Shown here: positions 24,601 to 33,600 of the stretch, in pieces
Layout: each line of letters opens with the position of its first letter
Numbering within the stretch: the first letter of the stretch is position 1
Translations under genes and position numbers: made by a program
Assembly: GCF_902459465.1 (NCBI RefSeq)
Contig: NC_047078.1
Span: forward strand, 1,116,001 to 1,180,000
Source of the DNA: Asterias rubens
Lineage: Eukaryota
Direction of reading: 5' to 3'
Length of the DNA: 64,000 nt
Notes under the pieces: model-generated
Database searches by the model: none
Told to the model about the DNA's origin: nothing
Seen by the model: only the letters and a program-made list of their open reading frames with translations

Positions 24601-27600
24601 TCTCCTGCATCAGCTGATGAAAAAACCTTCTCTTTTGAGGCCATTAAACTTTGGAGTAGTCTCCCCCACACTGCTCAAAAGAGGCTCACACATGGTGTAA
24701 CTGCAAACCTCACCCAACATGCTAAGTTTCAAATCCAACTCCCTCGTTCCCATGTTCAGGGATGTAATAGGCTGTTGAAAAAAAACCTGAACTATGAGCA
24801 CAAAGCGTGAAAGCTTGCGAGCGCAAAGCGTGTGAGCACAAAAGCTAGCGGTACGAAGCCTGCTTACATACATTAATCTTTGGTTTTAAAGGATTTGGGT
24901 ACCATTTCAAAATGTCCATAGATTTACATTAAACTTACAGGGTTTGAAGATAATGACAGTGGAAAGCTTCCCTTCAAATATTACTTACTGATGAGGTGCT
25001 GCAGTATTTGAGAAATGAGTAAAACAATGTCATGAAAATACGTTTGTAAATGCTTAAAATAATGTTCGTCTCATGAGACAAAAATTAGTTTCATGACATT
25101 CTTTTACTCATTTCCCAAAAACTACATCACCTCAGCACGTAATATTTTCAGGGAAGCTTTCTACTATCATTATCTTCAAACTGTGTAAGTTTGGTGTAAA
25201 TCTGTGGACATTGTGTTTTTTTGTCCTACAAAAGTTACATACACCCTTTAAAAGCACTACTCTGCAATTTGGAGAATTCCATATGCTTTTATCTTCATTT
25301 TGTTATGAATTTGATCTTAGTAAAAAAAAACTAAAAAAAAGAAGGAGAAATCAATCCCTGCATGTTGCCAACATACCAGCTCCAAGCATAGTAATACTGC
25401 TGTCTGCCTCCGGTGGTAGGACGTCGACCAACGCATTGCTGTGTTTGTGAAGAGCAACAGAGGCACTTGGCTTCAATAATTCCCTGTCTAGTGTGCTCAA
25501 GATTCTGACGTAGGAGTTGGACCCTGAAAATATAAAATGTATATTGAATTTAATATAGGGTAGATGGCCGTAGCTTTCGATCCAAACCGGAACTTCTTCA
25601 GAGGCATAAAACAAGTACAAACAAATACATATCCATTTATAGAAAAAGAGAGGGGAAAGGGATTAAGGGAAGGATCCAGAAGGAAGCGGGAAAATAACAG
25701 CCAATCAAAGTTTCTATTTCAGAAACAATAGTATATTGAATTTAATGCACGTGTGTGCAGCCACAATCGTGGGTTCACATTTTGTTGCTGTCTATTTTAT
25801 GAACCAAAGTTTGAAAATCACTGATGTACAGGTGTAGCAGCTGTCTCAATGTAATATATATGTCAATTAACAATCAGTGTGTCAATAAGGCAAATAAAGG
25901 GTAGAAACGAGTTCTTAAACAGCCATTTAAAACCAGCAGGATCGTGGCTGTGTGATAAAGCCCGAGCCGAAGACAAAAACGGACATTTAAAGGGATGCTG
26001 CAGTGAATTCAAATAAAACAGTTAATTTTGCTGTCATTTATTTCTGATATATTATGTATTGAACATCAATAAAATGTGTTTTGTTTTTCCCCCGACCTAT
26101 CTCACTTCTGTAATTAGCAAATAAGTCATGCCCCCCCCTTTTGTGGATTGTACCCGCCCCCTACCATCGACGTCACGTCGGGAATTCAAACATATCGTCG
26201 GCAAAAAGAGTCTGGTCCCTAACTACACGTGCCTAGGTACCAGGCCACACAGTGCACACGTCTCTATATGCACACAGCCAGGGGGCCCGACGGCTCGGGT
26301 GACCGACATGACATCACGTTTATGCAAATGAAGGCTCCCTTTTAGGGGTGGGGTGGGTTCCCCTAATCTCTTGAAAACCATTTTTAAAATACTTGCGCGT
26401 TTAATAAAAATAGAAAAAAATATTTCAGGTTTAAAAAATCATGTTTAATCGTTCAAACTATAAACAAAAAAACTGCAGCCACCCTTTAAGAACGAGTCAC
26501 TACTCTTTAATTTCCATTCATAAATACCCTTTTGTTGAAAGGCAAAACATTTTCACAATGTTAGACAATCTGCCATTTGTTTCCATTGCTATTTGGCGAA
26601 TTCTGCAAATTTTTGAAATCTTTTGCGAAAATGTTTAGTGTTCGTCGGGTGTTGAACATACATTACGTGCCACCGCTGATTTCCGACTGACAAATTGTTT
26701 TGCGCATGCGTGGATTTCTGCTGCTTGAAGAGCGCCCTCTTGTGTCAAAATCTTAAACAAAACAACGGTTGTAACCGAAAAGGGTTCGGAGAGACGCCCC
26801 TATTCAAAACAGCAAATCTAGTGGACCAATTAAACTATCGAACCAAAGCTATGAATATTTATGATAAAGAGGTCATAGTTCTTAAATAAAAATACAAGTG
26901 GCCATGTTTTTTTATGCGGCCGTGTGGATGGAATGGTAAACCGTGGGCGGTGTGTGTGTGGATTTGTATCAGCTGGGGCTGTGACGGGATGGTTTTTTTA
27001 GCCAATTTGAATCGTCAAAATCTAAGTAACGTGAATTTCCTCCGGGAAAAATGGACTTCACACGTAAGTATTATGTATTTAATAATATATTAATACAATA
27101 ATTAAAAGTGCAAACGCTTTCAAAACACTCTTCTGTTTATTTTGTGAATACCCATTTTTAGCACATGTCATGACAAGGAGGGCGCTTCACATGGCAAAAC
27201 AATACAGGTGGTTAATTTGTAATTGAGTAGATACTGTAGTTGTATGGGTCTACCATGATGAATAATGCACTCGATTTTTCCATATCACATATAGAGGATA
27301 CGTAAGACTTTTTTGAGATAAGGCAACTGAGAAATAAAACCGTAAAACTGTCAAACATAAATAACTAACGATGTGACAATTTCTGGCTTGGCTTGGTTTT
27401 TGGGGGTGCCATGATTTTTATCAATATCTGAAACTCAAGTGTGGGTACGTTTCCTTCAATTCCTCCATCCATGGTGGTGGTGTGGCCAAGTCACAGGTAC
27501 GCAAACAACTTTAGTTTTTCAATTTTTTCGTTCAACTTTTGTCAGTAAAATAACAAACTTTCATGAGATACTGGAAGTAACATCATAAATTAAAGTGAAT

Positions 27601-30600: not shown

Positions 30601-33600
30601 TGCCTTGTAGCTGTTCTGAGCATGTGGCTTAGTTGTTCCGTAGCCTTGTTCCCACTGACTTCTTGGAGTTTATCTTTCACAAGTTTTGTTCGCCGAAAGA
30701 GTGTTCGTTTTGAAACGTCATCGCTCGACTTTCTCGGATGAGTTATGCGTTGAACATACATTGCCTGTAATTGGAATGAAAGTAAAAAGATATCTTTCAG
30801 AATACTTTTTTTTAAAATGCAGACATAAAACTAAACATTTATTTTTAAAAAACATCCGTTTTTAGTCTTGTAATGAATTAGGCATTCATCATTTTAACTA
30901 ATGCAAACTTACCTTTCCACCTGTAGAAAGCCTAACTGTTCCTCCATCACTTTGTATTTGTTGTTTCAACAAAGTTGATGTCACCTGTTGACCCAACTTT
31001 CCAGACGCAGACATATTTCTCTTGATGAGGTCTCTGAATATGTGTTCATCTATATGTTGTGATGTCAGAGGGTCCTTACAATCATGGCTAGATGTACTAT
31101 TTAGCCAACTGCTTCGGTTGCAGGTTCTGCAGGTGACTTTTGCATTTCCGAGAATATTTAAAAAATATTCTCGGACAGGGCTGGTGTCCTTCAGACTTGT
31201 ATGTTTGTGACAGCTTGGACAAAGTACTGATGACGATGATGACCGGTTAAACACTACTTGTAAGCAGTCCAAACAGAAAATGTGATGGCACTGTGTTTCA
31301 ACCGGTCTGTTCAATATTTGGCTGCAAATTTGACAACATATCGATGACTCATCTGTTGTGAAGTTGTCACGAACAAATATTGTGGTTGTCTCAGCCAAAG
31401 TGTTGAAGTGCTGAGAAACTACTTCTTTGGCTGTTGCCTCATCTGTATCGAGTCGTTCCAGTCTGGCATACTTGGCTGCAGGCCGTCCAGTTTTCACTTC
31501 ATCAACTTTAGCACACACAGTGCAAGTTCCTCTTTCAGGATGGGGAGGCCACTCATTGGGGGGGTGATGGGGTTTTGGAAGGAACAAATTTGAGTAGCAA
31601 AGGTGACAGATTTGTGAGGGATGGCGATGATGTTCATCAGCTTGGATATTAATTCCATATTTTACTTGTATCTTTTCTGAGTAAGCACTGCATCTTTTAT
31701 TTTTTTTGCTTTTGTTTTTCCATTTTCGGATAGCATTGCCACACACTCTGCATAATTTCTCTAGATTTCTTGTATGTTCATGCTGGGCACTCATATTATT
31801 CTATACCTATAAAATGTAAAATTTGAAAGCAGTTATATTGTTAGTTGTTTTAATTTCCTTTTGGGGATTTGTTGTGTACATAAGAAAATGTACAGGTGTG
31901 AAAATCAATTAATCAAAGTAAAATAATATTAATATAATTTCCAATAAAAAAAATGGTTTGTTGTTTATCAAAGAAGTTAAATTAAAAAAATAATTATATT
32001 TGATAAATACTGATGTTAGAGTATGGGGGTAAGTGTTGTGGAAATCATAATTGTGAATTGTTTATCACTTAATTAATCAAGCTAAGTAACACCGTTCCAT
32101 TATTAAGACAAGAGATTAAGAAGTAAACAAATTGTAAACATTGTATTTTGAATAAAACATAGAATCCTTCTTAAATTAACCTAAAAAAATAGAATAGTTT
32201 TATCATCGTTTTATTTTTTAATAATATATTGAAAATTCAAAAGAATGTATTCAAAATTGCATATTGGGGGACTTTTGTTTTGACCAAGCCCACTAACAAA
32301 ATGAACAATTGGATACAATATCCGATCATCAGCGACCGTTCTTGTGGTGTGCATGCACAAAACACTGCGAACTATCGTGTACAATGTGTAAATGTACATG
32401 TAACACGCACTATGTGCACCGCGGAACAGCCGCAGAAGTCAACAAAACGTCAGGGAAATCCCGCTGATTTTGATCAATCCAGGGGGTTTGCAGTCATGAA
32501 AATATAATAATTTAACAGAAATGTGTTTTTTCTCTACAAAAAATATGTTTCTTTTATCAAATGAATTCAATTTCGTTCATAAACGCCCCCCAAACTCACC
32601 GTATAAAGTCGGATTTACGTTGCGCAGGCAGACGACATCTGTCAACAAAATGAGGGCTTTCCCGCGGTCAGGGGTCGGATAACAAGGGGGTGAGTCATTA
32701 TTATTACAAGAGTAAGGTTTAAAGAGTTGTTTATTGGTCAAAATTATCTCCAAATATGAATATTCAGTACCTTTTTTTACCCTTTGTTCCGTTCGGAAAC
32801 GTACAAATACAGCGGTAGGTCACAACTTATGAATAATTCATTTCAAGTTGACCTTCCATTGAAAGCCGCGCATGCGTAAAACCAAATGTCTTTCGTTGGT
32901 GCGTTCTGAACAGCGGTGGTGCGTGTTCACACATATTATTACGCGATCTTATTAATAGCTATGAATTGCCTTTCGCGCGCGCCCAACACGCGAAGCCAGC
33001 CTGTTTTAAACAGCTCCTGCTGGTCATTTTCAACCGTTTAAACTGCCGTGTGTGCCATGGGTTAATTCAAAGCCTCGGGTTTGAAAAAAGTTACACCAAA
33101 CTGCATGAAGGACCCAGGGAAGGATTCAGCTATCGATTTCACCAAACTCTTCCTAACTTTGGATTAATCTTAGTAATTAAGACGAGTTCTGTAACAATAG
33201 ACATTACAACGCATTGAACCCATCCTAAGTAAGGGCGAGTTACTCGTCTTAACTAACTCGAGATAGGATTATAATCCTAGCATTATGTGAAATCGCCTGT
33301 AGGTGTTTTAAGGAAGCTAAGTATTTTACACTGCACACACTGTCCCAAATTTGAACCCTGCCCAGCCTGCTTTAGAGCAACTGACCTGTTGTTGAGCCAA
33401 CGATGCCAGTGTGTTGGTCGACGGCTTCTAGGAATTGTCCGATAACGAGAGGAACGCTCTGGATGCGTTTGACTTCCTCCTGAGCATGAAGAAACTCCTT
33501 CTTCAGATTCTTCTGCTCATCTTTGATGTACTCCTCTTGGACTTCGTAAAATTCTATCTGTCGCTGAAGTTTCTGTGGAAGAGGGGCAAGACAAAATATA

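Follow-up and report, generated by a model that had tools for sequence, protein, structure and literature searches.

The 64,000-nucleotide stretch of Asterias rubens DNA analysed here (assembly GCF_902459465.1, contig NC_047078.1, positions 1,116,001 to 1,180,000; hereafter the window) carries a DNA transposon of 6248 bp at window positions 26671-32918, flanked by a perfect 4-bp target-site duplication, GTGC/GTGC. This element is probably an intact, recently mobile cut-and-paste transposon of the Chapaev group, to which it belongs by all features tested. The duplication fixes the termini and shows that a transposition event took place. It was left unmentioned in an earlier note on this DNA, whose outer coordinates, 26667-32922, include it. 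The CAC heptamer CACCGCT(G) is kept at both ends of the element (8/8 identical). Since the transposase gene lies on the minus strand, the left end, with the short spacer, is the gene's 3' end, and the right end, with the long spacer, is its 5' end. The outermost features are the following:

26667-26670, no strand: left copy of the target-site duplication, GTGC, identical to 32919-32922
26671-26678, plus strand: CACCGCTG, the terminal 8-mer on the 3' side of the gene, where cleavage presumably takes place; inverted repeat of 32911-32918 (8/8)
32911-32918, minus strand: terminal 8-mer CACCGCTG at the gene's 5' end, 8/8 inverted repeat with 26671-26678
32919-32922, no strand: right copy of the target-site duplication, GTGC, by direct reading of the end

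All long open frames with homologs were found on the minus strand, and protein homology in the window was limited to 27-32 kb. The coding part of the element can be described by a single gene model:

27673-31794, minus strand: transposase gene, 10 exons, 972 amino acids, homology-guided GT-AG model without internal stop
31794-30913, 30764-30484, 30343-30137, 30006-29764 and 29666-29590, minus strand: transposase exons 1-5 of the GT-AG model
29474-29272, 29141-28800, 28628-28476, 28345-28162 and 28019-27673, minus strand: transposase exons 6-10 of the GT-AG model

All 10 exons of the 972-residue transposase were colinear with proteins of 950-990 amino acids from Antedon, Diadema and other echinoderms. 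Of 49 residues invariant in the family it retains 46, among them D479, D549 and E904/E908, which are likely to be catalytic. Exon 4 matched Pfam DUF1280 (PF06918) with E=1.7e-14, a domain that spans the core of every relative, while exon 1 gave RING matches in Pfam together with a weak match to RAG1_imp_bd. Among all PDB sequences, the best match of exon 1 was to RAG1 residues 141-372 (E=2.8e-10), in the N-terminal zinc/RING region of RAG1. Identity of the window's family to any annotated protein is 30-45% at most. The core structure was tested on the Antedon relative P0033 (34% identical to the window protein) and not on the window protein itself, using an AlphaFold model built on a 46-sequence alignment (predicted local distance difference test score, pLDDT, 87.6). 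In a Foldseek search with this model, RAG1 and BbRAGL made up the first 44 PDB matches (lowest E 3e-15), with HzTransib next. VIA-align superposed P0033 residues 312-951 on RAG1 391-1008, nonamer-binding domain (NBD) included, with Z 25-26, and residues 141-248 on the RAG1 RING/zinc-finger dimerisation domain with Z 9.7; HzTransib reached Z 23 and the P transposase 6pe2 Z 14. The model showed the complete RAG1-like core fold, consisting of an NBD-like segment and the dimerisation/DNA-binding, RNase H, zinc-binding and C-terminal domains. The exon-1 match to RAG1 and the superposition of the P0033 core thus justify the designation as a RAG1-like (Chapaev-type) transposon, which the earlier note had used, over the whole protein. 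As modelled, the enzyme is structurally related to RAG1 over its full length, combining an N-terminal zinc domain and a RING finger with an NBD-like helical segment and a DDE core. The exon-1 domain was also encountered outside this context: in P0007 (Amphiura filiformis XP_072043951.1, 1239 amino acids) it matched at about residues 500-712, 919-1139 and 1135-1211, a pattern that points to Chapa/RING modules arranged in tandem, with no transposase core apparent.

Chapaev is placed in CMC by RepeatMasker, and Repbase uses the names Chapaev/Chapaev3. The group is characterised by an N-terminal Chapa domain, joined in some subgroups by a RING finger, and was assigned to the Transib superfamily by Kapitonov and Koonin in 2015 (PMC4411706). 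A structural link between the Chapa domain and the N-terminal zinc domain (NZD) of RAG1 has been described (bioRxiv 10.64898/2026.01.24.700457), and CMC elements generate target-site duplications of 2-4 bp (bioRxiv 10.64898/2026.08.26.747230). With Chapaev the window element shares the Chapa/NZD zinc domain followed by a RING finger, the DUF1280-type DDE core, the CAC termini and the 4-bp duplication.

Inside the terminal 8-mers, both ends contain a spacer and a conserved inner block:

26679-26688, plus strand: short spacer of 10 nt, ATTTCCGACT, unlike the 20-nt spacer of the other end
26689-26718, plus strand: inner 30-bp block of the 3' end, GACAAATTGTTTTGCGCATGCGTGGATTTC, with an A/T-rich portion ahead of the GC palindrome GCGCATGCGT (26702-26711)
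32891-32910, minus strand: long spacer of 20 nt, TTCAGAACGCACCAACGAAA, without counterpart in the relative L002 (see below)
32861-32890, minus strand: inner 30-bp block of the 5' end, GACATTTGGTTTTACGCATGCGCGGCTTTC, with the palindrome ACGCATGCGC at 32868-32877

The two blocks are identical at 24 of 30 positions, ungapped and at a constant offset of 10. Their match exceeded all 1000-2000 shuffles (p<0.001), and within the window GCGCATGCG occurs in the two blocks alone. When the 64 kb were searched with a degenerate 22-nt version of the block, only these two sites were retrieved, with 0 expected. Shuffles and pattern search together rule out chance as the source of the block match. Direct reading of the ends thus bore out what the earlier note had described, namely the same terminal start, a 24/30-identical 30-bp block, and gaps of 10 nt on the left (26679-26688) and 20 nt on the right (32910-32891). 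Counting from the heptamer CACCGCT to ACA(A/T)(A/T)T(T/G)GT, the segment that the note had likened to the nonamer of a recombination signal sequence (RSS), likewise gave its spacers of 12 and 22. Its caveats that the choice of this 'nonamer' was arbitrary and that the block holds an NRF1-like palindrome were well placed: the segment is an arbitrary slice of the 30-bp block with 6 of 9 positions identical between the ends, and the best-conserved core of the block is the NRF1-like GC palindrome. The spacers of the two ends proved unrelated, with at most 4 of 10 positions matching by eye in any register. Because the spacers are unrelated while the flanking blocks are kept, the 10-nt difference does not stem from a recent simple insertion into one end. 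A private recent indel, which the earlier note had named as the outcome that would overturn its proposal, was rejected as the cause of the 10-bp difference on the same ground, since the spacers are unalignable in every register.

Comparison within the family comprised one 3' end (from L001) and one 5' end (from L002), the closest public relatives being short metagenomic or draft contigs; termini in the window's family read CACCGCT/CACTGCT. Scans with exon-1 alignments returned one already known 1.4-kb contig among metagenome contigs and none among viral contigs. L001 (~73% nucleotide identity) has a homologous 3' end, CACTGCTG, in which the block is identical at 23 of 29 positions and homology extends to ~200 nt. 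In L002 (~55% amino-acid identity), subterminal homology at the 5' end begins with the very first base of the block (nt 29 of the element's right end corresponding to L002 nt 66) and reaches to about nt 186, and GTTTTACGCATGCGCG is identical at 16 of 16 positions between the 5' block of the window element and L002. The 65 nt of L002 upstream of the block showed no similarity to the window. That homology stops at the edge of the block indicates that the block is constrained and the spacer sequence free.

A crinoid, a diadematoid sea urchin and a sea cucumber contributed four more distant family members with both ends. Each of these makes a 4-bp duplication and ends in CACGTAT, not in the CACCGCT of the window element. 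The two ends of each element were compared by an unbiased scan of all diagonals with p values from shuffles, a positive offset meaning that the shared motif lies deeper at the 5' end:

Window element: offset +10, score 30, p<0.0005, the 30-bp block
Hl173 (L010 6965-18334): CACGTAT termini, 4-bp duplication AAGC; offset +23, score 18, p 0.013, ACTGCGCGTGCGCA at 3' nt 28 and ACTGCGCACGCGCA at 5' nt 51
Da177 (L009 9464-18055): CACGTAT termini, 4-bp duplication AATC; offset +13, score 16, p 0.05, TCACTTAG at 3' nt 19 and 5' nt 32, a single 8-mer
Am93 (L005 9354-15936): CACGTAT termini, 4-bp duplication CCAG; offset -20, score 16, p 0.04, GCGCCCTC
Am33 (L007 9082-16261): CACGTAT termini, 4-bp duplication GCTG; no offset, score 10, p 0.9, no motif

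The shared motif was thus deeper at the 5' end in three of the five elements (window, Da177 and Hl173), by varying amounts. At a further Asterias rubens locus, L008, no end pair with a matching duplication was found. A second regularity concerned the palindrome. Within 1.3 kb of family ends, seven 10-mers were at most one mismatch away from GCGCRYGCGC, with 0.22 expected (Poisson P ~5e-9; background of such 10-mers 0.04-0.25 per kb). At the 3' ends the palindrome-like 10-mer starts at nt 32 in the window element, nt 33 in Am33 and nt 31 in Hl173, so that it falls within a 3-nt window (nt 31-33) in three of four independent families (P ~0.007). In L001 it starts at nt 37, which equals 32 plus a 5-bp duplication, and in Da177 at nt 60, where there is a 27-nt insertion with a poly-A run; the 3' end of Am93 lacks it. 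At 5' ends it was present only in the window element (nt 42) and in Hl173 (nt 54). Furthermore, GCGCTCACT is common to the 3' ends of Hl173 and Da177 (nt 15-23).

Shared motifs of the two ends of the window element reach about 190 bp inward, at unequal positions:

26725-26740, plus strand: TTGAAGAGCGCCCTCT, a motif specific to the 3' end, kept in L001; the 3' end of an Antedon element (L005) has it as TTGAATTGCGCCCTCT, about equally far in
26824-26864, plus strand: GACCAAT (26824-26830) and ATGAATATTTATGA (26851-26864), both recurring at the other end and forming identity islands with L001
32733-32766, minus strand: GACCAAT (32733-32739) and TGAATATTCATA (32755-32766) of the 5' end, common to the 3' end and kept in L002
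32793-32816, minus strand: ACCGCTG (32810-32816) and TTTCCGA (32793-32799), a second, internal copy of motifs resembling the terminus, matching nt 2-8 and 10-16 of the 3' end

ATGAATATT occurs just twice in the 64-kb window, once per end, and the near-palindromic (A)TGAATATT(C/T)AT is present at both ends and nowhere else in the window. GACCAAT and (A)TGAATATT(C/T)AT have offsets of +26 and -29 between the ends and form identity islands with both L001 and L002. The internal ACCGCTG/TTTCCGA copy lies about 100 nt inside the 5' end, is weakly conserved in L002, and has its two motifs 10 nt apart as against 1 nt at the 3' terminus. These additional motifs at unequal offsets mark the ends as complex subterminal regions and not as simple heptamer-spacer-nonamer signals; in this they resemble other eukaryotic cut-and-paste elements, whose subterminal regions likewise contain multiple sites. 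As a side observation, TTGAAnnGCGCCCTCT (window 26725-26740; L001 ~5520-5535; L005 ~15874-15890) has been kept in 3' subterminal regions of elements whose proteins are only ~31% identical. Likewise, GCGCCCTC was found in the 5' end of Am93 and, in reverse orientation, in the 5' ends of Am33 and Da177. GCGCCCTC resembles a CTCF-type core.

How might these ends work? The reading we lean towards, with a little more than even confidence, is that the element has two non-equivalent ends whose unequal geometry would let the synaptic complex tell the 5' end from the 3' end; the degrees of belief that we attach to it and to its rivals overlap and do not sum to one. In such a complex the catalytic core would engage and cleave at the CAC terminus, and the inner block would serve as a second protein-binding site, either for the NBD-like region or possibly for a host factor of the NRF1/P3A2 type. 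The differing distance of the block would then make the 5' and 3' ends distinguishable. It appears from the sequences compared that the constrained distance is that of the 3' end, the 5' distance being longer and lineage-specific; what speaks for a constraint on the 3' distance is that three families have the beginning of the palindrome at nt 31-33. A strict one-turn/two-turn rule, as put forward in the earlier note, is possible. Of that RSS-like proposal, the bipartite unequal ends, the CAC 8-mer, the conserved block and the RAG1-like enzyme stand, whereas no conserved spacing rule became apparent in the ends compared. The comparison with relatives that it had suggested gave a similar picture: the block is conserved in L001 and L002 and the spacer sequence appears free in L002, while gaps of about 10/20 did not recur in these two single ends, nor an offset of +10 in the distant elements.

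Several observations weigh against unequal geometry as a functional property. The comparison covered a single copy of the family with both ends, that of the window. In L001 the 3' gap measures 15 instead of 10 nt, owing to a tandem GCTGA duplication (+5), which makes the 'spacer' 17 in the register of the earlier note. Exon 1 of this copy is frameshifted and the underlying assembly has 3x coverage, and we therefore give it little weight either way. In L002 a CAC would be expected 36 nt upstream of the core of the block, and none was found there; either the spacer length differs in that lineage or the copy is truncated. For the two Antedon elements, comparison of the ends gave p values of 0.04-0.9 and no significant inner block; the weak match in one of them was reversed (-20). 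Across families, ends of the same type were not more alike than ends of opposite type (mean local score 11.3 vs 11.9), and only individual 3'-3' pairs stood out; a general 5'-type or 3'-type end signature is accordingly not claimed. The block core is likely a host transcription-factor motif. Finally, many relatives have a (T/S)GG(R/Q)P motif just before the NBD-superposing segment, at about P0033 residues 300-310 (GGRP, GGQP or AGRP among the relatives), which is reminiscent of the RAG1 GRPR motif and would be its counterpart, and at this place (about residues 291-296) the window protein reads TGGKA.

Alternatively, the asymmetry may be a functionless accident of history, which we regard as less likely. 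Binding through a flexible linker, or a block that is a relic of a longer ancestral inverted repeat, would tolerate wide spacing, and a neutral 10-bp indel could have become fixed in the lineage. Such an origin is consistent with gap lengths that vary in every comparison, from L001 and L002 to the distant families (+13, +23, -20 or none), with the offsets of +26 and -29 of the other motifs in the window element, and with the failure of same-type ends to cluster across families. On the other hand, conservation of the block lies far above that of the adjacent spacer, with homology to L002 beginning right at the block edge, and the palindrome keeps its 31-33 nt from the 3' terminus in three families. 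In addition, the deviating length of L001 comes from a defective copy in a low-coverage assembly, and wholly unrelated spacers count against a recent indel.

We consider it rather unlikely that the inner block functions chiefly as a promoter or host-factor element, that is, an NRF1/P3A2-type GCGCATGCGC site acting in transcription of the transposase or on local chromatin, with its distance from the terminus irrelevant to transposition. The NRF1-like palindrome at its core points in this direction, as does the location of the 5' copy upstream of the transposase gene and beside the CCAAT-type motif GACCAAT; GC-rich motifs resembling transcription-factor sites, e.g. GCGCCCTC, moreover recur in family ends in either orientation. 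However, the full 30-bp block, not just its 10-bp core, recurs in inverted orientation at the 3' end, which shows no sign of a gene start, and the near-fixed distance between palindrome and 3' terminus in three distant families points to a coupling with the terminus.

Several known systems have unequal ends. In the P element, inverted repeat and transposase-binding site are separated by 21 bp at the 5' end but by 9 bp at the 3' end, and the element requires one end of each kind. It resembles the window element in combining a terminal repeat with an internal site at unequal distances, and its transposase is a distant structural match to the P0033 model (6pe2, Z 14), but it belongs to another superfamily and differs in its THAP DNA-binding domain, its 8-bp target duplication and its GTP dependence. 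In Transib, 12/23-like asymmetric ends have been reported for Transib5 of Drosophila and for Transib2 and N1-N3 of Anopheles (PMC8355894). Transib and the window element share a CAC-initiated heptamer, a second conserved element, spacers about one helical turn apart and a related transposase (HzTransib, Z 23); Transib has a 5-bp duplication and an A-rich nonamer and lacks the N-terminal zinc/RING region, whereas the window element has a 4-bp duplication and a 30-bp block with a GC palindrome. Among elements with a RAG-like gene pair, PflRAGL-A of Ptychodera flava shows a 10-bp spacer asymmetry and ProtoRAG of amphioxus has spacers of 27/31; an NBD with a GRPR/K motif contacts the nonamer (bioRxiv 10.1101/2023.08.20.553239). 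Like the window element, RAGL-A and ProtoRAG are deuterostome transposons with a RAG1-like enzyme and unequal ends. They differ in having a RAG2-like gene, a 5-bp duplication, TR2 next to the heptamer and an AT-rich nonamer-like element, whereas the window element contains a single gene and none of these sequence features. The RSSs of V(D)J recombination, in turn, are comparable in their CAC terminus, bipartite signal, unrelated spacers, one end longer by about 10 bp, and an enzyme homologous to RAG1 throughout; the window element departs from them in lacking a RAG2 partner and a clear A-rich nonamer, and in spacer lengths that vary among the relatives compared. The 5-bp duplication of RAG, RAGL and canonical Transib was found neither in the window element nor in its four relatives, all of which have 4 bp.

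A true RSS-type rule would demand that synapsis pair a short-spacer end with a long-spacer end, the two differing by one helical turn, and would have been inherited from a common ancestor of Chapaev, Transib and RAG. It would accommodate the 12/22 geometry in the register of the earlier note, the 11/24 that can be read in Da177 from the two positions of TCACTTAG (3' nt 19 and 5' nt 32), an enzyme family with an NBD-like segment and a whole RAG1-like core, and the asymmetric ends documented in some Transib and RAGL elements (PMC8355894; bioRxiv 10.1101/2023.08.20.553239). We nevertheless judge it improbable, because the register of the 'nonamer' was chosen arbitrarily, Da177 matches over no more than one 8-mer (p ~0.05), Hl173 stands at +23 and the Antedon elements at none or -20, the short spacer of L001 is longer by 5, the target duplication is 4 bp and not 5, the window protein reads GGKA in place of the GRP motif, and several additional end motifs lie at unrelated offsets.

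The origin of the 12/23 asymmetry is debated between a Transib seed and RAGL-A (PMC8355894; bioRxiv 10.1101/2023.08.20.553239). In the literature searched we found no analysis of Chapaev ends, although Chapaev shares the zinc/RING region and the core structure of RAG1, and no description of bipartite ends with unequal spacing for this group; the earlier note, likewise, was aware of no 12/23-like asymmetry described for Chapaev. One far-reaching scenario, to which we give little credence, would have Chapaev as a sister branch of Transib/RAG1 that pairs a short-spacer with a long-spacer end via an NBD-like dimer, so that synapsis of unequal ends would have been present already in the ancestor of Chapaev, Transib and RAG, before a RAG2 partner. 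If this were true, the root of the 12/23 rule would predate any RAG2 partner, and the intact window element would offer a ready experimental system. An apparently intact copy with bipartite unequal ends is in any case a substrate-enzyme pair for the function of end asymmetry outside the Transib/RAG branch. Should the spacing be irrelevant, the element would amount to a well-preserved representative of a known family whose subterminal regions are complex.

Searches with the ends, the block and the protein revealed no further copies of the element within the 64-kb window. A 12-nt exact match to its 3' terminus, CACCGCTGATTT, occurs at 54448-54459 on the minus strand (~0.008 expected). No inner block follows this match and no partner end is visible; it may be a solo end left behind by a related element, or have arisen by chance. 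Elsewhere, a second Antedon copy of the P0093 element (L006 1164-23165) lacks the last 27 nt of the 3' end. It lies between two annotated copies of the same 447-residue Nsp1_C gene, 15.1 kb apart, and thus appears to sit inside a tandem duplication.

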